A stretch of DNA of 64,000 nt from contig OZ218959.1 in NCBI GenBank assembly GCA_965112735.1, positions 372,001 through 436,000 on the forward strand, read 5' to 3'. The notes under the pieces were generated by a model, which made no database searches, was not told the origin of the DNA, and saw nothing but the letters and a program-made list of their open reading frames with translations. Source of the stretch: Phaeosaccion multiseriatum. Its lineage: Eukaryota > Protista > Ochrophyta, other classes. Both the position numbers and the translations under genes were made by a program. Shown piece after piece: positions 8,981 to 64,000 of the stretch. Position 1 is the first letter of the stretch, and every line of letters starts with the position of its first letter.

Positions 8981-9119
8981 CTTCCTTGCCTGCTCTTTAA
9001 AAATAAAGAACTCCCCTTCCTTGTCTCTTGTTTGGTTGTTCCTTTGCACGCTGTGGTGTGCAAAGAAGATCCGGCCATCAAATTCAAATCGGCCCCTCGC
9101 GCACCCCCGGGCTCAAATC

Positions 9120-9270
9120 GTAAACGAACGTTTCGGCCCCCTGACATGCTTCTGAGGCGACCCTGCTTCCTGCTTCTGGGGAAAGCCATGCAATAAGGCA
9201 ATGGTTGCTTCCTGCTTCTGGGCTGGCCTGTCTCAGAACCATGTCAGGGGCTGAAAGTTTGAAAGTTTAC
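9120..9270. repeat. Inverted-repeat (MITE-like or hairpin) element
   Basis: About 30-nt imperfect arms (tttcggccccctgacatgcttctgaggc / gtctcagaaccatgtcaggggctgaaa) enclose two direct copies of tgcttcctgcttctggg. Confidence 0.7.
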
Positions 9271-9452
9271 TCACCCTCGTTCACACACGAATACATGTGA
9301 ACAACCAACAGTTACCGGTACTAAGCGATTAAGCTTCACCGCAACATGACAGCACGCGCCCAACCAGCCCCTCGGCCTTTCGCCCTCATTCGGCCATAAC
9401 CCCCGACCCCACCCAGCCTGATTGCCTCATCGCCAGAGCCCCGTGCCATCAC

Positions 9453-9611
9453 TCGACCCCTGACGTGCTCCCTACTACCTGCTACCGGCCGACCGGCCGG
9501 CCGGCCAACCATCAGCTGCCACCGCCGGTGTGAGCTGGCTGCTACCTGCTGCCTGCTACCGCGGCGTGCTATCTGCTACCGAGAATCGCTCGGTAGCAGG
9601 TCAGGGGTCGA
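9453..9611. repeat. Inverted-repeat (MITE-like) element
   Basis: Arms tcgacccctgacgtgct / agcaggtcaggggtcga, internal ctgctacc repeats and a subterminal hairpin ctgctaccgag-aatcg-ctcggtagcag. Confidence 0.65.
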
Positions 9612-9901
9612 CAATTACCACCCAACAAGAGAGCCGAGCTCGCGGCAACTCCTGTGGAACTTTATTTTTTATTTATTTAGTTTTTTATTTTAAAAATAAC
9701 TAATCGTATGTAAAAATGTGAATGGCACAGCGCTCTTGGTCGCTGTCCGTGGGGCTGGACCAGCACTGCAGTCCCGCTTGACCGCTTGTTTCACATCCGG
9801 TGCGTCCCACCACTCTATGCTCTATGCTTGCTTGGGCCTCCTCCGCGGCTCTAAACCTCCCCTCTCGACATGATCCATCGTCCTCTTCAATAGCAATTCA
9901 C

Positions 9902-11560
9902 TCACTCCCCCTTCTCCCCCTTCGCCCAGAACCTCTTCTTCTCGGTGGCGCCTTGGTCAAACGTCATATGCTCGGGCTTGGGCTTCTTGAGCTTCATACC
10001 GTTGTCTCCTGGCTCGAACGTCACAATCTGGGGGCACATGGGCAGGCACGTAGGGCAAGCAAGGGAGAGTTAAGGATGGTGCACGTACGTGTAAGTTGCA
10101 TCACTCTCTCGCCCACTCCCTCACTCCCACTCTCTCCGTCCTTCACCCACTCCCTCACTTAAATCCCTCACTCAGTCACTCCCTCCTCGTACTCCTCACC
10201 TCCGTGCACCAGTTGTAAATCTTGTCGCAAAAGGCCTGCATGGGGAGGATGGTGAAGGGCTCCTCCAGTTGCGTGGCCAGCTCCTCAATTCCGAACAAGA
10301 AGACTGAAATGACGGCCGTGGCGGGGATCATGGCAATGTGGTTCCAGCTGTTGCCGAAAGGCTCGTAGAGAGCAAAGGGCACGAGGAGCAGCCAGGCCGT
10401 CAAGAAGCGTGCCGTGTGGCGCGAGTAGAAGAGAGGCACGGGGCTCGTCAAGAGACGCTCGGAACTGCCCAAGTTGTCTTCGAAGATGGTGGCAGCCCTG
10501 TGGACTTCGTTCTTTCGCATGAAATGCATGGGAAGGTTCTCAATGGCCACGGACAAGTCCTGCAGGGCCCTGTTGGGTCGGTGGGCAGCGCGAACAATGG
10601 ACTCAGCCTGCCCTTCCGGCAGCTTCTGGTAAAGCTCTCTCTTGAAATCGTTTTCGTCCTCGTCCTCGGGGCTCAAGTGGCGCTTCATGCATCGCACAAA
10701 GGCCCAGGTGCAGAGCGCGAGGGTCCTCAGGTCCTCCTCGCGCTCCTCGGGGGATACACTGGAACGGTCGTACATGGCGTTTCCCAGACGGACGAGGTCA
10801 CGCGTGTGGTTGATATTCATTCCCCAGTTCTTTCGGGCCTCGTCCCAACGCTGGTACGACGTGTTGGTGCGGAACACTGTTGTGGAGAGGACAGAAGAAT
10901 GGTGAGTGGTACAGGGGAAAAAAGACGTGAAGCTCTCTCTCCCCTGATACACATACAAGGACCAAAACAGGTACATTGGTGTATGCACAAGGAACAATGC
11001 CGGAAGACGGTACAGAGGACAGAAAATAAGTACCGAGCAAAAATTGATGATGCGCACATACCGAGAAGAAGGCCCAGCGAAGGACTACTGAGAGTAAATG
11101 GGGCCAAAGGCAGCCCCAACAGAGAGGTCGAGAAGAGCGCCGTGTGCTTGACTCCTTCAAAGTCTACGAGTCCCCCCGCCAATCCGTTGAAGAGGCACAC
11201 GGCCGTCGCGACGGCCGTCGTCGTCGCCACTTCCCTACCAATATTCTTGTAGATTCCGGAGGTCAACATGCTGGAAAAGTAGTACTGGAACCGCTCGGGA
11301 GAGCGGTGCTTCCTCCAGTCATCGTGCGAGTACACAGTGCGTCGGTACTTGCGAGACTCCTCGCCGTACTGAATGTCTTTGATGGGCGGCATGACAGGGG
11401 GTGCGATTTTGGTGTTGCCCTGCAGCGCGGTTCCTGACCGCGAGAGCACAGAACCGGTCGCCTTCCCGACCCGTGTCAGCGAGGGCTGGGGCACAAAGGC
11501 GGAGCAGCCCCCTGCCAGGGTGGCTAGGCACACAGCCACTGCAGCGCTCCGCATCAGCAT
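9902..11560 (-). CDS. Plastid-targeted bestrophin-like anion channel (BST/VCCN/UPF0187), copy 1; exons 11560-11062, 10876-10200, 10027-9902
   Basis: Motifs LLLVFRTNTSYQRWDEARKNWG, SERLLTSPVPLFYSRHTARFL and LFGIEELATQLEEPF. Signal peptide with GCSA-FVP cleavage. Confidence 0.93.
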
Positions 11561-11886
11561 GGCAAAAGGGGACAGGAAGAAAATGTGCGGAGAGTTTCGG
11601 CGGCCGCGTATGTCACAGATATGTCAGTGATCATCCGAAGGCGGGGCTTACGTAAGATTGTCTCTTTCTTTCCTTCCCATTCCCTTTGAGCTTTTAATAT
11701 TTAATAGGTGTCTCGGAGGTGAGTGAGCTCTCTCAATCAACGGTTTAGTGGTAACTGGTTATAAAAATACAATAAATAAAAATCGCGGCCCCCTCCCCCC
11801 TCGTCTTTCATACCTCCGGCGCTCACCAGCCGGGGAGGGCGCGTGAAGCTGCCTGCCACCGCGCACGCGTGAAACCGTCACCATAC

Positions 11887-13663
11887 TTAGCCCGTGGTAA
11901 GCGGGCGGCTGTCCCTCTCGACCGCCATGCCCCCTGCGTCCCGCCAGAACTGATCGCTGTTGTCGTACTGGTCAGTGTTGTCGTACAGTTGGTTGCTGTT
12001 GTCGTATACGTCCGAGAGCTGTGGCCGACCGTAGTCACTGCCTGCCACTTGGCCCATATAGTCACTGCCCCCCACTTGGCCCATGTAAGCAGGAGCAGCC
12101 GCAGCCGCCCCGCCCATGAGGTCACTGCCCAAGACTGCCTGCATGTGCTCCGCCTCGGGTGGGTTGACGTGCATGCCGTTGTCATCACCGGGAGAAAAGG
12201 TTACAATCTCCGTGCACCAGTTGTAAATCTTGTCGCAAAAGGCCTGCATGGGGAGGATGGTAAAGGGCTCCTCCAGTTGCGTGGCCAGCTCCTCAATTCC
12301 GAACAAGAAGAGTGAAATGGCAGCAGTGGCGGGGATCATGGCGATGTGGTTCCAGCTGTTGGCGAAGGGCTCGTAGAGAGCAAAGGGCACGAGGACCATC
12401 CAGGCGGTCAAGAAGCGTGCCGTGTGGCGCGAGTAGAAGAGAGGCACGGGGCTCGTCAAGAGACGCTCGGAACTGCCCAAGGTGTCTTCGAAGATGGTGG
12501 CAGCCTTGTGGATCTCGTTCTTGCGCAAGAAATGCATGGGAAGATTCTCAATGGCCATCGACAAGTCCTGCAGGGCCCGGTTGGGTCGGTGGGTGGCCTG
12601 AATAATTGCCGTGGCCTGCTGCTCCGGCAGCTTCTCGTAAAGCTCGGTCTTGAATGCCTCCTCGTCCTCATCCTCGGGGCTCAAGTGGCGCTTCATGGCC
12701 CGAACAAAGGCCCAGGTGCAGAGTGCGAGGGTCCTCAGGTCTTGCTCGCGCTTGGGCTGGTTGGGGACGCCGGAGCGATCGTACATGGCGTTCCCCATAC
12801 GGACGAGGTCACGCGTGTGGTTGATGTTCATGCCCCAGTTCTTTCGAGCCTCGTCCCAACGCTGGTACGACGTGTTGGTGCGGAAGACTGTTGCGGAGGG
12901 GAGAGAAGAGAGGGATCTATCAGAAGCTGCAGAGAACCAACACATAACATCGGTGCGGACACAATACGGAGGGAAACAAAGACTGTGGCGAGACCACAAG
13001 AATAATGTGCAAGAAAAGCAGTGTGTGTGTGTACGACTGAGAGAAGAGAAGGAAGAGCCTACGTAGAGAAGAAGAAGCCATTGTAGGGCTCGAACTTGAT
13101 CGAGGATGTATCAACGATGGATATAAAAAAAGGAACAATGCCCACGTACCAAGAAGAAGACCCAGGGAAGGACTGCTGAGAGTAAAAGGAGCCAACGGAA
13201 GCCCCAGGACAGGGAAGAACGGGCTCGAGAGCAGCGCCGCATGCTTGACTCCTTCGAAATCCTGGAAGCCCCCCGTCAAACAGTTGATGAGACACACGCC
13301 CAACGAAATTGCCGTCGTCAACGAGACTTCACGACCCAGGTTCTTGTAGATTCCGGAGGCGAACATGCTGGAGAAGTAGTAGAGGAACCGATCGGGAGAG
13401 CGGTGCTTCCTCCAGTCATCGTGCGAGTAGACAGTGCGTCGGTACTTGCGAGACTCCTCGCCGTAGGAAATGTCCTTGATGGGAGGCATGCGTGGGGGAG
13501 CCATGCGAGTGTTGTCCTTGAGGGCGGTGTTGAAGAAATTTCCCTTCCCACCGCGTGAACTGACCCCACATCCAAGCCGCGGCACCGTGAGCTGGGGCAC
13601 AAAAGCGGAGCAGCCACTCGCCAGAGCGAGTAGGCAGGCGACGATGGAGGCAGCGTGCATCAT
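11887..13663 (-). CDS. Plastid-targeted bestrophin-like anion channel, copy 2; exons 13663-13150, 12887-11887
   Basis: Same bestrophin motifs and CSA-FVP leader as copy 1. Extended tail with YMGQV and YDN repeats. Confidence 0.93.
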
Positions 13664-14327
13664 GGGTTTTTCTTTCCTGTAAGCAAGAACCGCGCGCTGT
13701 GCTTGGTAAATGTGGAATAATGAATCGTCGCAAATGGCGACTACTTGAAACGTGCACTTCAATGAAATAAAAAAACGCCGCCCCGTGTATAAACAGACAT
13801 AATTAATTAAACCCCCCCCCGTCTTTTCAATTTCCTTCACCGTCCTTCCGCCTGCCTGAGCGTGGCGAAGGCGCCACCTCGCAATAAATTAATTAATAGT
13901 GTGTGTATGCAAGAAGGAAGGGGGGAAATCTGACCTATGCCCCCCCCGCCCCTCTCTCTCTCACTCTCTCTACTGCTCAAAACTTGTCCACCACATGGGT
14001 CTGAGGGTCCATTATGCGTACTTGATAGTGACCTCGTGGGTTGGCCTCGTCACGGCTCCAATCGGCTTCGGTTTGTTGTATGCTGGCTCCACCGCGTTCC
14101 CAGACAAACTGTTCACTGGTAACAACGAGATGGATGCCCTGGTTCGCTCGCCCCCCTGCTGTGGGACGGGGCCCAATGCAGGATATCTCGCTGAAGCCCG
14201 CTAGGACCGCGCTTCCTCTGGCCTCCGTCGCTGGCCCGAAAGGGAGGAAGGCGGGGATGCTCACACCAAGCTCCTGCTCGTGTGTGCGTCACCACCGCTC
14301 CCTCACCTGTTGCCATCACCAGGGGGT

Positions 14328-15966
14328 TTAACCCGTGGTCAAGGGGCGTGACTCGCTGATGCTCTCCACAATCTCTACTGGGGAGTCCTGGAATGCCCTG
14401 CCGATGGGAGCCTGAGGCTGCATCCAGACTTCGCTGTTGTCGTACACTGGCTGCTGGTACTCCGGCTGCTGGTACTCCGGCTGCTGGTACTCCGGCTGGT
14501 ACTCCTGTTGGTACTCCATGGGCTGCTGCTGAGCACCACCACTGACGAGTATGTCCCGCATGTGCTCCTCCCTGGGCAGCTTGACGGGCATGCCGTTGTC
14601 ATCGCCGGAATCGAACGTTACAATCTCCGTGCACCAGTTGTAAATCTTGTCGCAAAAGGCCTGCATGGGGAGGATGGTGAAGGGCTCCTCCAGTTGCGTG
14701 GCGAGCTCCTCAATTCCGAACAAGAAGATTGAAATGATGGCCGTGGCGGGGATCATGGCGATGTGGTTCCAGCTGTTGGCGAAGGGCTCGTAGAGAGCAA
14801 AGGGCACGAGGGCCAGCCAGGCCGTCAAGAAGCGTGCCGTGTGGCGCGAGTAGAAGAGAGGCACGGGGCTCGTCAAGAGACGCTCGGAACTGCCCAAGTT
14901 GTCTTCGAAGATGGTGGCCGCCCTTTGGATCTCGTTCTTTCGAATGAAATGCATTGGGAGGTTCTCGATGGCCCTCGACAAGTCCTGCAGGGCCCGGTTG
15001 GGTCGGTGGGTGGCCCCAACAAGGGCCGTGGCCTGCTGCTCCGGCAGCTTCTCGAAGACCTCGATCTTAAAGTCCTCCTCGTCCTCATCCTCGGGGCTCA
15101 AGTGGCGCTTCATCGCCCGAACAAAGGCCCACGTGGAGAGCGCGAGGGTCCTCAGGTCCTCCTCGCGCTCCTCGGGGGGCACACCCGTACGGTCGTACAT
15201 GGCGTTCCCAAGACGGACGAGGTCACGCGTGTGGTTGATATTCATGCCCCAGTTCTTTCGAGCCTCGTCCCAACGCTGGTACGACGTGTTGGTGCGGAAC
15301 ACTGTTGTCGAAGAAAAGACAAGAGAAGTGTTGGAAGTAGAAGAACAGGGCGGTGAGGAAGAAAGACAGAGAACATGCAGCTGTGGGGAAGAGAGAAAGG
15401 CAGTGGCCTGTGCATTTGCTCATGTACAGAAGAAGAACCAATGTGCACTTACCCAGAAGAAGGCCCAGAGAAGGGCTGCTGAGAGTGAATGGAGCCAAAG
15501 GCAGCCCCAACATGGGAAGGAACGGGCTCGCGATGAGCGCCGCGTGCTTGACTCCTTCAAAGTCAGTGTAGCCTCCCGTCAATGCGTTGAAGAGGCAAAC
15601 GAACGTGGCAATGAGCGTCGTTGCCGTGACCTCCCGACCCAGATTCTTGTAGATTCCGGAGTTGGTCGTGGAGGAAAAGTAGTAGAGGAATCGCTCGGGA
15701 GAGCGGTGCTTCCTCCAGTCGTCGTGCGAGTACACAGTGCGCCGGTACTTGCGAGACTCCTCACCGTAGGAAATGTCCTTGATGGGAGGCATGGGCGGCA
15801 CCCTCGGTCGGGTTGAGCTAAGGGAAGTTCGGCTCACCCCGTTCTTCCCCACCCGCGTGAACCCCGCCTTGCCGACTCCCCCACCCACCATGGGCTGGGG
15901 CACAAAGGCGGAGCATCCCCCTGCCAGAGTCACCAGGCACGCAGCAACAGCAGCAGTCCGCATCAT
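14328..15966 (-). CDS. Plastid-targeted bestrophin-like anion channel, copy 3; exons 15966-15453, 15301-14328
   Basis: Same bestrophin motifs and CSA-FVP leader as copy 1. Extended tail with (EYQQP)n repeats. Confidence 0.93.
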
Positions 15967-16424
15967 GCTAAATCTGGGGCAGGAAATGTGCCAAACAAAG
16001 AAAAAACAAATTGTAGGAGGGGGGTCTCCGTGCGTAATGAACATCTGGTGGCAAGTGAAACTTCCAATTGACTTCAAGTCAAAATTTACCGCTCACGGCC
16101 TTGTGTGAGTGCCGCTCGACCCGTGATCCCCGCGCAAACTACTACCCAGTTCATGGCAGCCGCGAAGGTGGGTGAGGCGGAGGAAGGGCGGAAGAGGGGA
16201 GCGTCACGGAGTAGAGCAGAATGGAGAGCCAGCCCCTGCAGCCTCTTCTCTTCGTTGTGTCCGTCCGTCGTGTGGAGCCGCAGGCTTACTGGAGGCTGAC
16301 TGGAGGCGGGTTGTGCCATTCAAGGGGCCTTCGGTCGGGCCTGGGGCATACAGTAATCGTCTGGCCGGCTCGAGACAGCACCCCTCGCTCCCGAGAAGCT
16401 AGTACTTCCTTCCTGCCCATGTGC

Positions 16425-16491
16425 TCAACCCCTGATACACTTATCGCCCAAATTCTCGATAGCGGATAGCGGATAGAGTATCAGGGGTTGA
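16425..16491. repeat. Short inverted-repeat element
   Basis: Perfect 14-bp arms tcaacccctgatac / gtatcaggggttga, flanked by atgtgc and atgtgt. Confidence 0.7.
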
Positions 16492-16522
16492 ATGTGTCTC
16501 CCTGCATCTCTGCTCTGGATCA

Positions 16523-17745
16523 TCACCGGATAGAGCTCCGATCGTACAGGCGCATGGGAGGGTCCTCCGAGGCCTTGACGTGGGCCCACTCCTCTGCGGG
16601 CAGATGGTACCTCAGCGTGAACACCTGGCGGCGAGAGGCGGGGAAGGCCTCAGCATGGAGCGTTGTTGCACGGCTGAGACAGAGGTACATGGACAGCGAG
16701 AGCCAACTCTGTCACGACCAACCACCGCGACAAAGCTACGTGCTCCTAACTTCGCCCGGTGTCCCTCCCTCCCTTCCTCACACCCACACACTTACTCCCT
16801 CACTCCCTCACTCCCCCACTCGCCCACTGACTTACCCGCACGCCCTCCCTGCTGCAGAGTCGCCGCACTAGGCTGCCCACCTGGTCCACGAGCGTGGGAT
16901 AGATGTACAGGTAGATCACCGTTGCGGTGGCCAGCAGCTGCTCTACAGCCGCGTTGCTTGGGTCAAGGGATGTCACGTCGGTACAGCTCCACGTGACGAG
17001 CTCTTGCCCCACCCCTTCCTTCGCGGCAATCTCCCGCGCCACAGACACGCACTCTGATGACACGTCCACGCCCACCCCTCTGCAGCCGAGCACCTGATGA
17101 ATGAGTGAAAGAGAAGAGGGGAGTGAGCCAAATACCGGCATGACAAGGGAGAACCTGCGCGTGGCTGGGCCCGGACTCTCTGCACTCGTCCAACCCAGTC
17201 GGTCAGACAAGTCGAGTCTCTCAGTCTCTCCGCACACTCGCACCTTGGCCGCAGCGAGAAGTACCCTTCCATCTCCGCATCCAATGTCCGCAATCACGTC
17301 AGCCGACGTCACCTCTGCTCACGACACAGGCCGCGAAACGACACAGGTTAGGTGGCTTGACAAAGTCGTCATTGTGCTCAACGTTCAGCACGTATACGTA
17401 CCTGCGAATGAGAAGAAGCGCATGAGGCCCTCGACGGAGCTGGGGAGATACGGGCTTTGCCAGCAACGTCCTTCCAGCTGCGAGTAGAGAGAAGAGGAGA
17501 GGGCGAAATGAGAAACTTCGTCTTTGATCAATTGCGTGATGTGCACTCGCCTTTTCCTCAATGGCTTGGTCCAGATGGCCATCTTCGAGAGCGCTGTACA
17601 CACCTCCATACGTGTCCTCCAGGTGCCTCGTGTAAGATTGCGCGGCGATCACCATGTTGTTCCTACTGCTACTGCTGCTGCTGTGCGCCTCGGTGCTTGC
17701 CATAAACCCGACAAAGTCATCCACACTCTTTCTTTTCTTCTTCAT
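16523..17745 (-). CDS. Class I SAM-dependent methyltransferase (FAM173-like small MTase), 5 exons
   Basis: SPYLPS pre-motif, motif I DVIADIGCGDGRVL, post-I GVGVDV, ATVIYLYIYP and terminal VFTLRYHL. Exons join in phase. Confidence 0.85.
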
Positions 17746-20973: not shown

Positions 20974-23900
20974 ATCACCAACTGCTGCTGCTGTTGCTGT
21001 TGGTGCTGCTGGTGTCGCTGGCGCTCCTGCCTGGATAGCTCCCACTCCCTTCTCAAGTGTTCGTCGTTCAGCACGTACGCCAGCACCTTCTTCATCCTGA
21101 GCGTGGATGGGGCCGTGAGCGGTTGCTGGCCCCCCTCCTCCCCGCCGTTCGCCTCCCCCGCACCCCCACCCCCACCCCCGCCACCTCGCCCTCGCAGCAC
21201 GGCCCCCACTCGCCTGACACGACTGCTTCTACTACCCCCTATCCTCCCACTGCCACCGCCACTAGCTCTGCCGCTGCCTCCCCCTGCCCCCTCCTCGTCG
21301 GCCCAGGTGGGCTCTGGCGGATGAGGCATCAACTTGAAGAGTACCTTGGCCGTTTCCTTCCCCTTGCAAAGCCCGTCGAGCACGCAGCCCAGCACCCAGC
21401 GGGGTAAGTAATGCTCCCCCTCCTGTGCCGTCAGCCCGCCCGCCGTACCCTGCGTCAGCACCTTCTCCCGCCCGCCTCCCCCGACCTCTGCCTCGGTGAT
21501 CCACAGCCACGTGTCAGCTGCCATCCGAGCAGTCCTCTCCCTCTCCCGCACAGCTCGGTCCTCTGTCCTACCCCTTTCTGGAGGCTGTTGCTGCTGGTCC
21601 TGCGGGTCCCGCTGCTGCATGACCTTTTGCTGGTGGTGAAGCCTTTGCCGCTCGTCGCCGCTGTCCTCGTCGCCGCTCTCGCCGGATGACGAGTCAGCCT
21701 CCCGCGCCCCGCCCGACTGCTGTACCACCAACCGCTGCTGCTGCTGCTCCTGCTGCTGCCGCACCCCCTTCTTGCTACTGTTAGCCCCACCTGCGTACCT
21801 CGTGCCCACGCCGACGCCTCCCTCGCCACTCTCACTCGCTGCCCTTCTTAGAAGCATCTCTCGCTTGTCACCCCACCTCGTTAGCAGCCCGTCCAGCAGC
21901 CGCTGTCCCAAGTTAACCTTCACGTCTACGTCTTCTGCAGGAGGGAGGGGAAGGAGGAGGAGGAGAAGGAGGAGGAGGAGGAGGAGGAGGAGGAGGAGGA
22001 GGAGGAGGAGGAGGAGGAGGAGGAGGGCCACACCACAAGTGATGGACGCTGCGGCGTGAGAAGCAGCTAAGGAGCGAAGGTAGGGCTGCGGAGAAGCAAA
22101 ATCCTAAATAAATAAATATCTATCGATCTATCTTTACAATTTACACCGTCCAATCCACTGCCATCCATCCATCTGTCTATCTGTCTGTCTATCTATCTGT
22201 CTGCCTATCTATTCCTGGCGAGGAAGTAGTACCTCCTCCACCACATTGGGTTCCTCAATCACCCACTCACTCACTCACTCACTCACCTAGCGCAGGCAGC
22301 ACTGGCTGCAGCTCTCCCCCTCCTCGGGCCTCCCTTTCTGTAACGGCATCACAAATGGCTGCGTCGTCGGCGTGCATCTCCCCGTCGAAGGCCTCCCTCT
22401 CGGCAAGCAGCACCCGCGGCACTCCCAGGCGACAGTCTACAGAGAACCAACTTCGCACGCAGAGCATCTGGAACAGCTCTGCGTGCCCGCCACGCACGCA
22501 CACACACAGAGTCAGGGAGGGAGAGACAGAGAGTTGCGGGGTGAGACAGGTGCAAAAGACTGATGGAGAGAGGTGTGAGAGAGAGAGGAGGGGGGGGGGG
22601 GGGGAGGGAGAGAGAGACAGGGACAAATAAGACAAGAGTTAGGAGAGATAGGGAGAGAGAGAGTGAGGAGAGAGAGAAAGAGAGAGTGAGTGAGTGAGTG
22701 AGTGAGTGAGAGAGAGAAAGAGAGAGTGAGTGAGTGAGTGAGTGAGAGAGAGAGGAGAGAAAGAGAGAGAACGAGAGAGAAAGAGAGAAAGAAAGAGAGA
22801 GAGAGAAAGAGAGAGAGAGAGGGAGAGACCAAGGGGTGATACGCACCTTGTGCCTTGTCCTCCAACACCGTCCCCGGGGGGTACTGCACGACCTGCCTTC
22901 CCTGTGTAACGTCCCACAGCCCCACTAAGGGCGGGTTCGAATCGTCCTCCGTCAGCAAGTGCTGCCGATTGCTCAGCACCTGACCATGAGTGGTGATGAG
23001 TGGGTATGAGTAGGTATGGGCATGAGTGGGTATGAGTGGGTATGAGTGGGCATGAGTGGGTATGAGTGGGCATGGGTGGGTTTGAGTGGGCATGAGTGGG
23101 CATGAGTGGGCATGAGTGGGCATGAGTGGGTATGAGTAAGTATGGGCATGGGTGGGTATGAGTGGGTATGAGTGGGCATGAGTGGGCATGAGTGGGTATG
23201 AGTGGGTATGAGTAGGTATGGGTGGGTATGAGTGGGCATGAGTGGGTATGAGTGGGTATGAGTGGGTATGAGTGGGTATGAGTGGGTATGAGTGGGCATG
23301 CGTGGGTATGAGTGGGTATGAGTGGGTATGAGTGGGTATGAGTGGGTATGAGTGGGTATGAGTGGGCATGGGTGGGTATGAGTAGGTATGGGTGGGTGGG
23401 CATGAGTGGGTATGAGTAGGCATAGGTGGGTATGAGTGGGTGGGCATGGGCGCGCGCGCTAAATGGCTGTGTGTACTTGTTTAGCCTTGGCCTTAGCTTT
23501 AGCCTTGGCCTCTGTTTGGAGGGAATGGGACAGACCAAAAGGGACTGACACAGAGAGATTGACCACCGACCTTGCAGCGCTTCACCCCCGGGCGGCCCTT
23601 GATGATCACGGCAGGCTTGTAAGGCTGCATGCGACTGGGCCCACGCTCCCCCCTGGGCTCGTCCCCCCCCTCCTTCCCCCTCTCCTCCCCCTGGCCGCTT
23701 CTCGTGCCGGTCGAGGAGGCTCCCCCCGCCCCTACCCGTCCCCCTGCAGTGTACAGCTTCACGTCTGCCTCGACTGTAGCCACCCACAGCCCACCCCCTC
23801 CGTTAACGGCCACCAAGTCCAGCACAGAGGTGTTCCCTGTGTGTGGTTCGAGGGAGGAGGGACGGTGGAAGGAAGGAAGGGAGGGAGGGAGGGGAGGGAG

Positions 23901-32890: not shown

Positions 32891-35539
32891 TCATTTCTTC
32901 AAGCAGTCGTAGTGGCCGGGCCGGTAGAGCAGCGTGAAGGCCGCCTCCTCTCCCCGCACCTCCTCGGGCAATGTAATGAGCATCAGCCGCTCGCCGAAGT
33001 CCTGCACGCACGGGCAAGGGGCACGCACGAAGATACGACGATGGAGACGTCAGAGCCGAGGGGGAGATATGAGAAACGATCGAAGATGCGTTGCTGCTGC
33101 TCAGAGACCCAGAGAGAGAGAGAGAGAGAGAGAGCACGCCTTGAGTCCACCCCATCCCAGAAACACAAGACTAGAGAGGGAGGCATTGATAGACAAGAGA
33201 GGTTCCCTAAGCGTTCGTAGAGACAAGGAGGGAGGCATTGGACCGAAAGAACGAGCTTACTTGTCCGTCTAGGTACTCCACGCCCACCCTGACGGAAAGC
33301 GCCTCGCACAGGGCCATCATCTGCACCTGCTCGCACTCCTTCCCGTTGGGCTCCACCTCTGCAGTACATGTACATTCGGACGTCGCGCGAGGGACGGAGA
33401 GAGGGAGGATCGAGGGGGCTCGGACTCATTCAATTTCCTGTTTGAGTTTGCTTCTACTACGAAGTACTTCTTTTTACTAGCCTGAGCCTACCCAAAACTA
33501 AACATGTGAAGAGGTGGCGACTTACCTCTCGCGCAGAAAGTGGCCACGTCGGGACAGCCCGTGGCCTCAATGAAGGGCAGGAAGCGCTCTGCGTGCTGCT
33601 TCAGGAAGCCCGAGGTGAGCAGGCGACAGTACCATACCATGTATCTTCGGGACAGAGGAGAGAGGAGAGAGGAGAGAGGAGAGAGGCGGGCCGAGAGGCG
33701 TTTACTTCTGTTGGCACGCGCTGGTACGTTCGCAGGTGCGGAGTGTTTTTTTAAGCTTGGTGAAAGACACGTGTGTGTTTAAGGACTTACTCTGCGGTGC
33801 CGCCTTCCTCCCGAAACTCCGTCTGAACATTGCCCATCAACACGGCGTTGTGAAGTGAAGCAAACAATATGAGGGTAAGAGACAGAGACACAGAAAGAGA
33901 GAGAGGGGGGGGGGGAGGGAGAGAGAGAGGGATTGAGCGGCAGAAAAAGGGAGAGAGAGAGAGAGAGAGAGAGCGGAGACCTCGGCGACGAGAGGACCAG
34001 CTAATGCAATTGAACGTGTCCAACCGAAATGAGACAAAGAACCAACGTCTCACCTCCAAAAGCGACAGTGTTTTGGAGGGCAGGGCCTGCAGCTCCTCCA
34101 CGAAGGGCTCCCAGAAGCCGTCTACTACCATCTCGTTGTAGCCCAGGGCCACGAGCTTGGCCTTGCTGTCCACTACGGCCGCTGTGAGTCTCTTGAGCTC
34201 GGCCTCCGCTGCGCTGCGATCTGACTCGGCCTCCGAGGAGAGCCCTAGGGCAAGTGAGTGAGTATGTGAGTGAGTGCGTGAGTGAGTGCGTGAGTCAGTG
34301 AGTGAGTGAATGAGTGAGTCAGTGAGTCTGTGAGTGACTGAGGCAGTGAGTGAGTGAGTGCGTGAGTGAGTCAGGGAGTGTGTGAGTGAATGAGTATGTG
34401 AGTGAATGAGTGAGTGAGTGAGTGAGTGAGTGAGTGAGTGAGTGAGGCAGTGGGTGAGTGAGTGAGTGAGTGAGTGAGTGAGTGAGGCAGTGAGACAGTG
34501 AGTGAGGCAGTGAGTGAGAGTGAGTGAGTGAGTGAGTGAGTGAGTGATTGCGTGCGTGTACACGCGCAATCGGGTGACGTGGTTTTTTTTGAGCTGGTGC
34601 CGGTGTGAGAATGCACACTTTTGCTAGACAGACTAGCTAGACTGGCACCTCCTAGTGCTAGACAGACCGGCACCTCCTAGACGCACAGCTCCCCACGTGA
34701 ATAAAGCAAGTCAGCTGAGAGATGTCAGTCAACCAAACAGGTGCCTCCTCCTGCCAAGTGCCTCAGATCGAGCACGGATAGCCTCCGGGGTGGGCTCAAG
34801 CCTGCGGGTAGGGAGGAAGGGAGGAAGTGCAGAATCGTAGGCGTCGCCCCTCCCCCCCCAACGTCGCCGACTCACCTTCTATTATCACCTCACACCAAGA
34901 GAACAGGAAGGCTCGGTAGAAGCAATTCCCGTCCCCTCGCACCCTTCGCAGCGAGGAGTAGCGCTGCAGATCATGTGGGGGGAGAGTGAGGCAGCAGTAC
35001 AGCGGCAGCAGAACAACTCAGAGAGTGGTACGTTGGGTTAGAAGGAGGATAGCCTCTCCCCTCCAGTTTGCTCCAGGGCCTACCTTGGACAGATCGTCGA
35101 TGCCCCGCAGGAAGCCTGGCTTGGGATTGCCTTCGTACAGCTTCTTCAGTGCTGAAGGCGGCTCAGGGGCACCAATGAGCTGAAGCAAGAGAAAGAGGGA
35201 TGGGGAGCAGCACCAGGAGGAGGTGATGGGCGGAGACGAGTTGATGGGAGGAGGAGGAGGAGATGAAATAAAGAGAGCAGGAGAGCGCACTCAGAGTGCT
35301 AAACGCGAAGAGAGCACTTGCTTGCCCCGATCCAATGAGATTTAGACCCAGCCCCGCTTCTAGAGGAGACGTCACGGAGATGCAGAAAGGAAAAGGTTTA
35401 CCTCGGCCTCCTCTACGCTTCTCGCAATGTCTCTCTGCTGCTCTTCCTGGGCTTTCATTTGTTCCAAAAGCTCATCCCCGGTCTTCGAGGGCTGATCCTG
35501 AGCTTCTTTCACTTCGGTAGGGATATCCGCGGGCTCCAT
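32891..35539 (-). CDS. OTUB1: Otubain-type deubiquitinase (peptidase C65), about 8 exons
   Basis: The catalytic exon at about 34890-34965 reads RYSSLRRVRGDGNCFYRAFLF. Other exons give YMVWYCRLLTSGFLK, EVEPNGKECEQVQMMAL, VEYLDG and LLYRPGHYD. Confidence 0.93.
34250..34548. repeat. Intronic (GTGA/TCAC)n microsatellite
   Basis: Degenerate tetranucleotide array directly visible in the sequence. Confidence 0.95.
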
Positions 35540-57900: not shown

Positions 57901-60712
57901 TCGAAGCAGTCCTTGCCTCCCTCTCTCTGCCCCCTGACCTTGATGGCAACAATGAGTGCTTCCTCAAAGGCGCGAAAGGCCTCTGCCTGGTGGGGCCCTG
58001 ACGTACTCGAGTGCAGCACAACGCTGAGGACGGCATTGGATGGCAGTGGATGGATGGAGGGAGGGGGGGAGGGGAAAGGAGGGAGGAAGGGGAGAGGGAG
58101 TTCGTTGTTGAGGGAGGGGCAGGCAGGACAGCCCTATCCCCCATCACCTCCCACATACAAACACCAGCCCAGGACAGCGGCAAACGTACAGCGGCAAGCG
58201 CACAGCGGCAAGCGCACAGCGGTCTCTCTTCTCTCGACCCACCCCCCATCCACCGTCATCCCTTCCCCTCTATCCCCATCCACTGCCATCCCCTGTACCT
58301 TGGGGACCCTTGGGTGCTCTTGGAACCCGATCGTGAAGCTCTCCTGCGGGGGTCGGACTGCTGCTGCTGCTGCTGTGAAGATTTCCGCCGCTGCGTGGAG
58401 GGCCGCCTGTCCGACCCCGCTCCTTTCCTCTCTGACGAGGAGAGGGAGAGAGAGAGAGAGAGAGAGAGTAGAGCTCTGAGTTAGACTTGGGGACTTGGGT
58501 GCTGTGGACAGATCTCGTTACGGTGTGCACGCATTGTGAGTGAGTCAGTGAGTGAGGTAGTGAAGGAGGGGGTGAGTGAGTCAGTGAGTGAGTCAGTGAG
58601 TGAGTCAGTGAGTGAGTGAGTGAGTGAGTGAGTGAGTGAGTGAGTGAGTGAGAGGGGGAGTGAGTCGGTGAGTGAGTGAGTGAGTGAGTCAGTGAGGGAG
58701 AGGGTGAGTGAGCCAGTGAGTGAGTGAGTGAGTCAAGGGAGTGAGTGAGGGAGGGAGTGAGTGAGTAGACCCGTCTCCGTCTCAGCCACGGACGGTGATA
58801 CCATACCCCCTCACCTTCAAGCGCCCCCCCCCGCCCCTCCCCCTCCCCTTGCCCTCCCTCCATCTGTGACTCCAAGTGCTTCGCTCGCTTGAGCTGTCAT
58901 GGCCATAGCCGTAAGGGGGGACGGGAGGGGAGGAGAGCAAGGGGGGGGGAGGGGAGGCAGATGGCGAGTCACGCACGCACACACAGAGGGTCAGGGCGAG
59001 GCGAGCGAAGGCCTGGCTCTAGCAGGCATGCTTTCCTGCGCCACTCTCTCTGCCTGGCGCCCTCTCTCTCCCTCTCTTTCTCTCTCTGTGTGGTGAGCGT
59101 GCGATTTATGCGTGTATGGGCTCTCCTCCCCTCCACTTCCTGTCCCTGTGGCCATACCTGTTCCAGCGCCTCATCCGTCTTCCCTTCCTTACTGAGTCGC
59201 AGCGCCGATCGCTTCAGAGCCAGAGCTTGCTGGCGGAGGCTGTTGTGGGCCGCGGGGGCAGGGGCGGCCGGAGGAGCAGCAGCAGCAGTAGCAGCAGCAG
59301 CAACAGTGGGACGACGAGGAGGAGGAGGAGGAGGAGGAGGAGGAGGAGAAGGAGCAGTGGTTCGCGCCGGGCGGGGGGGAGGGGGCGGGGCAGCATTGCC
59401 CGCGACAGAGAGGTGGACCGTTTGGGTTTCTGCCACCTTGGAGAGAGAGAGGGCAAGAGGGCACACAGAGCGAGCAGCGGACACGCACGGACCATGGGGC
59501 GGTGAGACGCGTCCTCCTATCCAAAGGGGAGGGGGGAGGAGGGAGGGGGGAGGCGCAGGGAAAGTGCAGACGCGGAAACCCTCCCGCCCGCTCTTCTTGT
59601 TTAGGCGATGGATCACGGATCTGCCTGCCCATGTGCCTGCCCATATGCCTGCCCATATGCCTGCCCATATGCCTGCCCATATGCCTGCCCATTTGACTGC
59701 CCATGTGCCTCCATCCGTCTGTGTGTCCTGACCCCCCTTACCTGGTGCACGGCGTCGAGTTTCCTGCGCACCCCAAGCTCCTGCTCCAGGGCCTTCGCGC
59801 TTCGCATGCACTCGATGGCCTGGATGGAGGCACATGGGCATGGGCAAAGGACGGGGCAAGGACGGGGCATATCAAATGCAATGAGGACGAGGACGGACGG
59901 TTTCCCCACATGTCAGAGGCAAATGGGCCACCGCAGGAGGAGCAGGAGGAGTTAATGAAGGGGGGAGTTTGGCGAAGTACAAAGAAGAGAGAAGGACTAT
60001 GAACATGAGCACCAACACGCTATGGTGTCAGATGGAAGCTCTCTTGACTCACCCCTTCCATGTCTCCTTTGTGCTTTAGATCCATAGCCTTCCGCTTCGT
60101 CGCCAGTACTCTGCGCTGCAGCTCTGCAATCTCAGAGTCAACGACAGCCCCTCCTGCTTGCTCTACCTTCGCCGCTTCTGGAGGGGGCATCGGAGGTTTC
60201 TTTGACAATGCTCCAGAGGGTTGCTGCTCCCCCGTCCCTCCGTCTGTGACTCCCCCCTCCTCCTCCTCCTCCCCCTCCTCCTCCCCGAGACCGTCCTCGA
60301 GGCCTTCTTCCTCTCCGACGCCAGCACCTCCATCATCATCATCATCATCATCATCAGCATTCTCTCCCATGAGGTCCCCGAGCTCGGCCAAAAGAGAAGG
60401 GTCTTCTAAATCTAGGTCCGGGTCTATCTGCGGTACATATTCGCCCCCCGCAGCGAGCTGCATGGCTTTCTGGAGCGCCTCATTGGCCTTTTTCTCAGCT
60501 GCTGCCTTTGCTGCGGCCTCGTCTGTTGCACCTGCCCCTGCCGCTTTCACTCCGCTCCCCCCTCCGTCATCCCACCCTAAGGCGTTGAGCTCAGCGAGTA
60601 GGGACGGATCGTTCTCATTGAACGCCATGGGCAGTGACGGGTCCCCCTCTTCAGCACCCAACCCTGAAGCGCTCTTGGCCTTCGCCTCCTTCTCCTTCTT
60701 CCGTCGGAACAT
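54911..60712 (-). CDS. Coiled-coil and C2 domain protein (CC2D1/Lgd-like) with DM14-like helical repeats, multi-exon
   Basis: Two DPSLLAEL motifs, helical repeats (KRKAMDLKHKGDME-AIECMRSAKALE; KRSALRLSKEGKTDEAL), PPDWHWE, C2-end motif VPLQPLLTQCEV...RRELGGSLSVCIRLNTPI, and SNDVLEAEI. Confidence 0.8.
57781..57892. repeat. Intronic (CAGT/CTGA)n microsatellite
   Basis: About 27 near-perfect tetranucleotide copies. Confidence 0.95.
58535..58765. repeat. Intronic (GTGA/TCAC)n microsatellite
   Basis: Degenerate tetranucleotide array directly visible in the sequence. Confidence 0.95.

Positions 60713-61384: not shown

Positions 61385-64000
<2,616 letters not shown>

Follow-up and report, generated by a model that had tools for sequence, protein, structure and literature searches.

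Three intact bestrophin-like genes, A (433 aa), B (504 aa) and C (495 aa), lie head to tail on the minus strand at 9902-15966 of the window, by which we mean the whole 64,000-nucleotide stretch of Phaeosaccion multiseriatum DNA analysed here. The array is compact, with the three genes inside 6.1 kb. All three are transcribed and spliced, and all three are under purifying selection. The explanation that we favour, and hold to be probably correct, is that these are three expressed tandem nuclear genes for plastid bestrophin anion channels, which would serve as differently regulated isoforms and whose cores would undergo gene conversion. Beyond this we infer the membrane, the ion, a role in CO2 concentration and the specialisation of the copies, the CO2 role from homology only.

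Gene models, transcription and targeting

Coordinates refer to the minus strand unless we say otherwise. Gene A (9902-11560) has three exons, at 11062-11560 (exon 1), 10200-10876 (exon 2) and 9902-10027 (exon 3, including the stop), and its match to Pfam PF25539 falls on exons 1 and 2. Gene B (11887-13663) has exon 1 at 13150-13663 and exon 2 at 11887-12887; gene C (14328-15966) has exon 1 at 15453-15966 and exon 2 at 14328-15301. We looked for a fourth bestrophin copy across the whole window and found none. The long antisense open reading frames that cover the cores, such as those at 10338-11252 and 14899-15816 on the plus strand, we take to be by-products of high GC3 and not genes.

Evidence for transcription comes from X5, an RNA-like run on this organism from a separate study and sample, which represents a second strain with its own SNPs. 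The predicted first introns are intron 1 of A (10877-11061, 185 nt, GT..AG, phase 1) and the single introns of B (12888-13149, 262 nt) and C (15302-15452, 151 nt). Because X5 contigs jump by exactly 185, 262 and 151 nt at these three places, we conclude that A, B and C are all transcribed and spliced. The contig over gene C extends about 58 nt upstream of the ATG. Gene B has the highest contig depth among the copies in X5, and the expression ranking B > C > A that the depths give is a mere hint, since contig depth measures expression poorly.

Intron 2 of gene A (10028-10199, 172 nt) is predicted solely from its GT..AG ends, its phase 0 and the conserved tail regained by removing it; exon 3 was recognised because it is homologous to the tails found in B, in C and in other diatoms. 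A degenerate (GTGA/GGGA)n simple repeat makes up the 5' half of this intron. The intron has no counterpart in B, in C or in any bestrophin gene of the five other diatom loci that we compared (L001-L005), so it was likely gained in A. We rejected an introner or transposon origin for it: the matches across the window are just (GTGA)n/(GGGA)n simple repeats, and they define no element.

The preliminary description of this locus, which was made from the letters and open reading frames, had raised two concerns, a triplet created artificially by assembly or haplotypes, and expression of a single copy. Contigs of X1 and X3 span both spacers (11339-12229 and 13436-14478) with even depth, which excludes the artefact, and each of the three genes has its spliced X5 contig. 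Depth on unique pieces is single-copy-like, about 86-146 in X1 and about 425-570 in X3. Some variant or paralogous sequence is seen as loose contig ends at 12088 and 15032/15062. Apart from these ends, nothing beyond the general risk of repeat-rich assemblies speaks for an artefact, and the copies are about 9% apart in the core and unalignable elsewhere. The idea that one or two of the copies are dead is at odds with the intact frames, with a dN/dS of about 0.3 and with the spliced transcripts of A, B and C in a strain that carries its own SNPs. We put the chance that the triplet is artefactual or partly dead as negligible.

All three proteins begin with a plastid presequence. That of A (11387-11560) has 21 aa of signal peptide up to a CSA|FVP site, after which come 37 transit-like residues that include neither Asp nor Glu. 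In B (13484-13663) and C (15787-15966) the signal peptide is 20 aa long, the CSA|FVP site is the same, and the transit-like part that follows measures 40 aa; its acidic residues number one in B and zero in C. The cleavage context GCSA|FVPQ is common to A, B and C, and the hydropathy of the h-region is 2.6-3.1. Of 44 full-length homologues, 38 carry a similar presequence, in which a small-x-small|Phe site precedes a transit-like stretch poor in acidic residues.

Pore, tails and upstream regions

We ran all similarity searches exon by exon, not on the joined spliced proteins. In every copy exon 1 matches positions 2-68 and exon 2 positions 70-287 of the 288 in the Bestrophin_2 profile (PF25539), which stands for the UPF0187 family of BST, VCCN1 and KpBest channels. 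Exon 2 alone gives E-values of 4e-51 to 7e-53 and 175-180 bits in the three copies, where the cut-off is 27. The best solved relative is the plant channel MdVCCN1 (7EK1, E 8e-22), followed by bacterial KpBest (E about 5e-9). A neck triad of Pro, Leu and Phe (SSPSLGLLL|VFRTN) aligns by sequence to P184, L188 and F192 on TM2, the pore-lining helix of MdVCCN1; the triad and the entire stretch LGLPLAPFTLSSPSLGLLL plus VFRTNTSYQRWDEARKNWG are invariant across A, B and C.

The aperture position varies among the copies. The codon that aligns to Ser301 of MdVCCN1 and Ile180 of KpBest encodes Met in A (10518-10520, within PMHF-M-RKN), Leu in B (12526-12528) and Ile in C (14943-14945), and two independent alignments, one to 7EK1 and one to KpBest Ile180, agree on the assignment. 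Thus the aperture Ser301 of VCCN1 is not kept, and neither is the Glu195-Tyr332 hydrogen bond: the Tyr is retained, and the Glu195 equivalent is Asn, here and in all the diatom sequences. For the Arg cluster of VCCN1 (R88, R96, R100, R103), the alignment begins at R100, which is Glu here, and R103 is Lys; the earlier residues are unaligned.

The C-terminal tails take different forms. Gene A has a short tail of 41 aa (9905-10027) with a basic KKRFW end, an ending that resembles those of many diatom homologues (KRFF or RFW). The 106-aa tail of B (11890-12207) is rich in Tyr, Asp and Gly and includes a 27-nt unit repeated twice (12032-12084), and the 98-aa tail of C (14331-14624) has (P)EYQQ repeats, with 3-5 copies of a 15-nt unit at 14449-14517. 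Both end in SRPLTTG.

The A-B spacer (11561-11886, 326 bp) holds the 3' UTR of B, which an X5 contig follows to about 11737, and all of the promoter and 5' UTR of A; it has no similarity to the other spacers. The B-C spacer (13664-14327, 664 bp) contains the promoter of B as well as the 3' UTR of C, covered by an X5 contig at 13860-14478. Read depth is very high over a (CT)10/poly-G simple repeat in this spacer, at 13940-13971. The three upstream regions share no word of eight or more nucleotides. They have four 7-mers in common (shuffle mean 0.37), one of which, CACATTT, sits 18-51 nt before each ATG; in C it lies inside the 5' UTR and so cannot be a start site. The CO2-response motif TGACG[TC], an element defined in Phaeodactylum, occurs 0, 0 and 1 times within 300 bp upstream, which is no enrichment over a background of 0.78/kb. 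This count lends no support to a CO2 response, although it tests the point weakly.

Divergence, probable gene conversion and the age of the array

The copies are alike in the middle and different around it. The 225-aa cores have 88-90% protein identity and 90-92% DNA identity, and exon 1 has 70-73% protein identity. The introns and upstream spacers, at 40-56%, are unalignable, and so are the C-terminal tails. We found dN/dS values of 0.27-0.39 among the copies. Synonymous divergence drops from 5' to 3', and this drop suggests gene conversion: dS is about 0.9-1.8 over the presequence, 0.40-0.54 over the rest of exon 1, which belongs to the mature protein, and 0.19-0.24 over exon 2 (Fisher p 7e-4 for the gradient on codons invariant in amino acid). 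One 75-nt run is identical across A, B and C, with a run test that is marginal (p 0.04), and GC3 is raised in exon 2 (0.80-0.84 versus 0.71-0.74). Taken together, the 3' part of the core has probably been kept alike by gene conversion. Stronger constraint at the codon or RNA level in the most conserved part is another possible source of a dS gradient.

On the genes themselves the preliminary description holds up. It had reported three intact head-to-tail paralogs of the bestrophin family (BST/VCCN1 type), with similar cores, diverged introns and leaders, and a CSA-FVP plastid signal in each. We find intact frames on the minus strand, a match to PF25539 over the full profile, the core identities and unalignable introns and spacers given above, and a heterokont-type bipartite presequence in A, B and C. 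The dN/dS and gene-conversion analyses that it had suggested are those of the preceding paragraph.

The closest relatives, among the best 120 matches, are diatom bestrophins with up to 89% identity, and all the named ones are diatoms. Judged by these matches, the ochrophyte of the preliminary description would be a diatom or something very close to one. PtBST1-4, TpBST1/2, CrBST1-4 and VCCN1 are not among these 120 proteins, and our tree is drawn without them. At least three other diatom contigs, all metagenomic, carry local bestrophin clusters, so the tandem arrangement is not unusual and such arrays are common. Paralogues group by locus, with support of 100/99 at L005, 100/99 for g3+g4 at L001 and 88/84 at L002.

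The preliminary description had proposed an independent local amplification. The clade A+(B+C), at a support of 80/51, points weakly that way, and an older array that has been converted fits equally well. Such an array may even be shared with other diatoms, its young look being the product of concerted evolution; we think this somewhat less than an even bet. It would account for introns, spacers and presequences that are saturated (dS about 1 or more) beside a core dS of 0.2, for the 5'-to-3' gradient, the long stretches of identity and the higher GC3 of the homogenised part, and for the grouping of paralogues by locus at every other multi-copy locus. However, the flanks have no synteny with the five other diatom loci, and the g1 and g2 genes of L001 are old (dS about 1.9) and yet unhomogenised. 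Copy number and orientation also vary between loci, as expected from repeated independent duplication. Synonymous sites proved unusable for ordering or rooting the duplications, being saturated relative to L001 and L002 and differing in composition (GC3 of 0.80-0.84 versus 0.53-0.55).

Function and comparison with known channels

By homology, A, B and C would encode subunits of pentameric thylakoid-membrane channels permeable to HCO3- and/or Cl-. Channels of this kind in diatoms and Chlamydomonas supply bicarbonate to a lumenal carbonic anhydrase, which sets CO2 free at the pyrenoid. The preliminary description's background on Chlamydomonas BST1-3 and the diatom BSTs agrees with published work. 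The PtBST and TpBST proteins build up at low CO2; TpBST1/2 and PtBST3 reside in the pyrenoid, where the C-terminal extension of PtBST3 directs it (PMC11142338). Knockout of PtBST1 lowers the affinity for inorganic carbon and raises non-photochemical quenching, and its authors discuss a role in regulating the photosystems (PMC11142338).

The same knockout phenotype lends something to a different reading, in which A, B and C are VCCN1-like thylakoid Cl- channels whose main task is to set the proton motive force and photoprotection rather than to supply the pyrenoid with bicarbonate. Plant VCCN1 is the closest solved structure, and Cl- conduction that adjusts the proton motive force is a further role of bestrophins of the VCCN1 type. 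Upstream of the genes the CO2-response motif is not enriched, and no other genes of a CO2-concentrating mechanism occur near the array. Against this, hallmarks of VCCN1 are lost (Ser301 to Met, Leu or Ile; Glu195 to Asn), the N-terminal charged helix is just partly alignable, and the diatom relatives that have been characterised build up when CO2 is low, with PtBST1 needed for high inorganic-carbon affinity (PMC11142338). We consider Cl- conduction unlikely as the main task. The Cl- and bicarbonate roles are mutually compatible.

Returning to plastid anion channels kept as isoforms, the copies are most likely a few isoforms that differ in regulation, and possibly in placement, rather than mere dosage copies, because their promoters and UTRs are unrelated and their presequences, aperture residues and tails (41, 106 and 98 aa) differ. 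The preliminary description had offered dosage increase or hetero-oligomers. Its dosage part is now the less favoured, with promoters, tails and the aperture residue pointing to specialisation. It had also called the array a module, which does not fit the neighbours, a C5orf34-like gene, a methyltransferase and a DUF3337 protein, all unrelated. Hetero-oligomers would have a place in a more elaborate division of labour, which we regard as a long shot. Conversion would hold the pore helix and the subunit interface identical, so that heteropentamers are possible, the aperture would tune selectivity or conductance, and the tails would sort the isoforms. The Tyr-rich tails of B and C, with their SRPLTTG ends, might lead to the pyrenoid-penetrating thylakoid, as the PtBST3 extension does, and short-tailed A might stay in stromal thylakoids. 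If this were true, concerted evolution would be the norm among bestrophin arrays of diatoms, with the by-locus grouping seen at four diatom loci as its mark.

In algal CO2 concentration, bestrophin channels have been proposed as a key step, and they are candidates for transferring that mechanism to crops by engineering. The array described here adds three well-defined, expressed genes of this family from an uncharacterised, diatom-like genome; together with the three metagenomic diatom contigs it shows that diatoms commonly have bestrophin genes in local arrays, with paralogues that group by locus. As one pore position and the tails are where the copies chiefly differ, they lend themselves directly to comparisons of selectivity and of sorting within the plastid. 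The array is a real yet fairly ordinary expansion of a known gene family, and it refines the current picture without changing it.

Among known systems, bacterial KpBest (PDB 4WD8 and mutants) shares the fold family by sequence, and its hydrophobic Ile180 aligns with the Met/Leu/Ile position; it differs in being prokaryotic, with no targeting sequence or tail, and its identity to A, B and C is low. Plant VCCN1 (MdVCCN1, PDB 7EK1; Hagino et al. 2022, PMC9076864) has in common the TM2 neck Pro-Leu-Phe and the TM3 Tyr (PLxYxR). Unlike it, the copies here have Met/Leu/Ile for Ser301, Asn for Glu195, no clearly conserved voltage-sensing N-terminal helices, and long variable tails. The Chlamydomonas proteins BST1-3, which interact with one another, share more than 80% identity, come from clustered genes and have been proposed as pentameric thylakoid HCO3- channels (Mukherjee et al. 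2019, PMC6708349). Like A, B and C they are three near-identical plastid bestrophin-like paralogues close together, but spread over a 130-kb region (PMC6708349), whereas here they are within 6 kb and strictly head to tail. Targeting here is also by signal peptide plus transit peptide, unlike that of BST1-3, and the expansion is independent of theirs because this lineage is a different one, with a red-type complex plastid. The diatom PtBST1-4 and TpBST1/2 (Nigishi et al. 2024, PMC11142338) are alike in Pfam family, plastid presequence, several isoforms per genome and variable C-terminal extensions. Centric diatoms have two BST isoforms and pennates more than three, and the consecutive model numbers of TpBST1/2 (4819/4820) and the close model numbers of PtBST3, 5 and 4 hint at local clusters there as well (PMC11142338). 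Compared with TpBST1/2 or PtBST1/2, at about 66% similarity (PMC11142338), the three copies here have cores that are far more alike (88-90%).

The genes, their introns and their transcription

Reading the minus strand over 9850-16100 for gene models, we find three bestrophin-like genes, all in one orientation across 9902-15966, the head-to-tail paralogs of the preliminary description. Gene A occupies 9902-11560 and encodes 433 aa in three exons; B (11887-13663) and C (14328-15966) are two-exon genes that encode 504 and 495 aa, respectively. They have in common a phase-1 intron with GT..AG ends at the identical codon, a Val between ...SLGLLL and FRTNTSY, with lengths of 185 nt (A), 262 nt (B) and 151 nt (C). 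Gene A has a second, predicted intron of 172 nt in phase 0 (10028-10199, minus strand) at TE|IVTF, a site at which B and C are uninterrupted and the codons are also contiguous in all bestrophin genes of L001-L005, five other (metagenomic) diatom contigs. The splice signals, the phase and the restored tail (IVTFEPGDNGM...PEH...KKRFW), a match to the tails found in B, in C and in many diatoms, argue that this intron is real. A degenerate (GTGA/GGGA)n microsatellite (TRF: period 4, 21.5 copies) makes up its 5' half, and similar simple repeats are found at 16765-16824, 22665-22753, 34416-34548, 58607-58764 and 63011-63108. Repeats of the GTGAGT kind bring 5' splice sites with them, and the second intron of A therefore looks like one born out of a simple repeat. 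Long plus-strand ORFs antisense to the cores (10338-11252, 12346-13005, 14763-15356 and 14899-15816; at most 305 aa) are not genes: they are mirror images of the sense genes, produced by high GC3, and even give "homologues" in L001.

Sequencing runs X1-X4 of this organism come from one sample and include about 0.9 of the stretch's sampled words; X5, a run of the same organism from a different sample and study, includes 0.49. X5 is labelled "DNA?" by guess, and we treat it as RNA from its behaviour alone. Contigs of X1 and X3 bridge the A-B (11339-12229) and B-C (13436-14478) spacers, and depth on unique pieces is even (86-146 in X1, 425-570 in X3). The X5 contigs, with 16 single-letter differences from the window, omit exactly 10877-11061, 12888-13149 and 15302-15452 (CT..AC on the plus strand), and include UTRs and scarcely any intron; exons 2 and 3 of A have no X5 coverage. 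From this exact intron skipping and UTR coverage, it follows that a second strain transcribes all three genes, and not one only, and splices them as modelled. The bridged spacers, the even depth and the spliced contigs of the second strain together rule out a haplotype or assembly artefact, and the triplet is genuine. Contig depth in X5, a poor measure of expression, hints at the ranking B (about 1100-1400), C (355-440), A (10-70).

At a (CT)10/poly-G repeat in the B-C spacer (13940-13971), contig depth in X1 and X3 rises to 10-30 times the local level, with many loose ends. This simple repeat occurs genome-wide, and the excess depth does not mean that the locus has changed in copy number. Elsewhere, X1, X3 and X5 contigs match up to 12088, adjoining a 27-nt repeat of the B tail, and up to 15032-15062, within the C core, and then diverge into unlike sequence. 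These ends may correspond to a tail-length allele and to a contig of another paralogue, respectively.

The promoters and UTRs of A, B and C are unrelated. The A-B spacer has only 326 bp, which must contain the B 3' UTR (to ~11737) and the entire A promoter. The sole sequence common to the three promoter/5' UTR regions is the heptamer CACATTT (11581-11587, 13708-13714 and 15984-15990, minus strand), 18-51 nt before each start codon and present in only four copies on that strand in 9000-17000; that of C lies within the transcribed 5' UTR. Just beyond both array ends, the motif TCRRCCCCTGAY (9243-9611 and 16425-16491; 5 occurrences vs 0.16 expected) appears as inverted pairs (9453+/9600- and 16425+/16480-) and one lone copy (9243-), which look like small MITE-like elements.

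Presequence, pore and tails

At the N terminus of each copy is a hydrophobic 20-21 aa signal peptide with the end GCSA|FVPQ, followed by 37-40 residues, of which 0-1 are acidic, 4-6 basic and 5-8 hydroxylated, until a conserved MPPIKDI motif. The same layout is found in 38 of 44 full-length homologues. The classic heterokont plastid presequence has a Phe at +1, and the predicted presequences of A, B and C are of this type, in keeping with the plastid signal reported for each copy.

All exons were searched singly. In each copy, exon 1 matches positions 2-68 and exon 2 positions 70-287 of the 288 of Pfam PF25539 (Bestrophin_2), the latter with E-values of 4e-51 to 7e-53, which identifies A, B and C as true members of the bestrophin family. 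Among relatives of solved structure, the apple thylakoid chloride channel MdVCCN1 (7EK1) comes first, with E-values of 8e-22 (exon 2) and 4e-5 (exon 1), and the bacterial KpBest is second. In the MdVCCN1 numbering (Hagino et al. 2022, PMC9076864), neck residues P184, L188 and F192 are the Pro, Leu and Phe of SSPSLGLLL|VFRTN, and neither this stretch nor the whole surrounding helix differs among the copies. Tyr332 is retained, but Glu195 is replaced by Asn, and the column of aperture residue Ser301, where the KpBest alignment also places aperture Ile180, has Met in A, Leu in B and Ile in C. By these alignments, A, B and C appear to lack the VCCN1-specific features. Across 101 homologues this column has 47 M, 23 I, 23 L, 5 V, 2 T and 1 A, and the Met/Leu/Ile series is a lead for bench testing.

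All tails begin with the diatom-wide IV(T/S)(F/W)xPGDNGM...PEH motif and are divergent afterwards. The A tail has a short, basic end (KKRFWAKGEKGE), comparable to the KRFF or RFW termini that many homologues have. In B and C the tail is roughly 100 aa long, has a high content of Tyr, Gln and Asp, terminates in SRPLTTG and includes internal repeats of recent origin (27 nt x2 in B; 15 nt x3-5 in C). Since the C-terminal extension of Phaeodactylum PtBST3 directs that protein to the pyrenoid (Nigishi et al. 2024, PMC11142338), the different tails may by analogy correspond to different places in the plastid, and tail-dependent sorting is a second lead for the bench.

Divergence among the copies and origin of the array

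Highly similar cores with diverged introns and leaders had been described, and the regional comparison agrees. The exon 2 core (225 aa) has 88-90% protein and 90-92% DNA identity among copies, and exon 1 has 70-73% protein identity; introns and spacers, at 40-56%, are unalignable, with zero spacer-to-spacer blastn matches. The dN/dS values proposed as a check are 0.27-0.39, and all three copies are therefore under purifying selection. By region, dS falls from 0.9-1.8 for the presequence, through 0.40-0.54 over mature exon 1, to 0.19-0.24 for exon 2. At amino-acid-invariant sites, all three copies have identical codons in 51/83 cases in mature exon 1, 62/82 in the first half of exon 2 and 84/97 in the second half (exon 1 vs exon 2, Fisher p 7e-4); a random draw from the genes' own codon usage gives about one third. 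Identical runs reach 75 nt in all three copies and 105 nt in A and C. Codon bias linked to expression must act alike on all exons of a gene, and for this reason we read the pattern as a sign of gene conversion in the 3' core. Taken by itself, the run test is marginal (p 0.04), and stronger local constraint, rather than conversion, is a possible source of the dS gradient. Conversion of the 3' core would perhaps be GC-biased, GC3 being 0.80-0.84 in exon 2 vs 0.71-0.74 in exon 1.

Among the best 120 matches, all named proteins are from diatoms (Stephanopyxis, Chaetoceros, Seminavis, Fistulifera, Amphora, Entomoneis, Aulacoseira and Pseudo-nitzschia), with a highest identity of 83% across the query, and of 89% for P0074, a database homologue. 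Clusters recur: L001 has four bestrophin genes in 7 kb (three head to tail, one inverted), L002 has two with a single unrelated gene between, and L005 has two in tandem. L003 and L004, which end nearby, have one each. We found no flanking genes common to the window and L001-L005. In a tree of 36 cores, paralogues cluster by locus (L005 100/99, L001 g3+g4 100/99, L002 88/84), and the window genes form an A+(B+C) clade with weak support (80/51); synonymous sites are saturated against L001 and L002. Both repeated independent duplication and concerted evolution fit these data. Of the two, the independent local amplification of the preliminary description is rated higher, and an old array kept homogeneous is somewhat less likely, not by much.

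The two youngest copies of L001 (a 272-kb contig), g3 and g4 (10001-13152), are tail to tail with dS 0.47 and dN 0.037, and are without the intron that g1 and g2 have in common with the window genes. In L003 (2504-4978) and L004 (2216-4250), the bestrophin gene is tail to tail with a gene having guanylate/adenylate-cyclase and phosphodiesterase domains. As cAMP is a known CO2 signal in diatoms, the recurrence of this arrangement may have a biological meaning or none.

Comparison with known bestrophin systems

Upstream of A, B and C, the Phaeodactylum CO2-response motif, an element defined in Phaeodactylum, occurs at background level only. Neighbouring genes encode a C5orf34-like product, a methyltransferase and a DUF3337 protein. 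The triplet as first described is confirmed, and its interpretation as a candidate pyrenoid/CO2-concentrating module is supported in part. In Chlamydomonas, the paralogues BST1-3 lie in a 130-kb region, share more than 80% identity, interact, and are low-CO2-induced and required for the CO2-concentrating mechanism (Mukherjee et al. 2019, PMC6708349). Diatom BST proteins accumulate at low CO2; PtBST1, PtBST2 and PtBST4 are located in stromal thylakoids and PtBST3, TpBST1 and TpBST2 in the pyrenoid, and loss of PtBST1 results in lower inorganic-carbon affinity and higher NPQ (PMC11142338). Model numbers, consecutive for TpBST1/2 (4819/4820) and close for PtBST3, 5 and 4, hint at local clusters in model diatoms too. 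By analogy with these systems, a role of A, B and C in CO2 concentration may fairly be inferred, and the locus, ordinary in kind, joins the Chlamydomonas BST1-3 and diatom BST genes.
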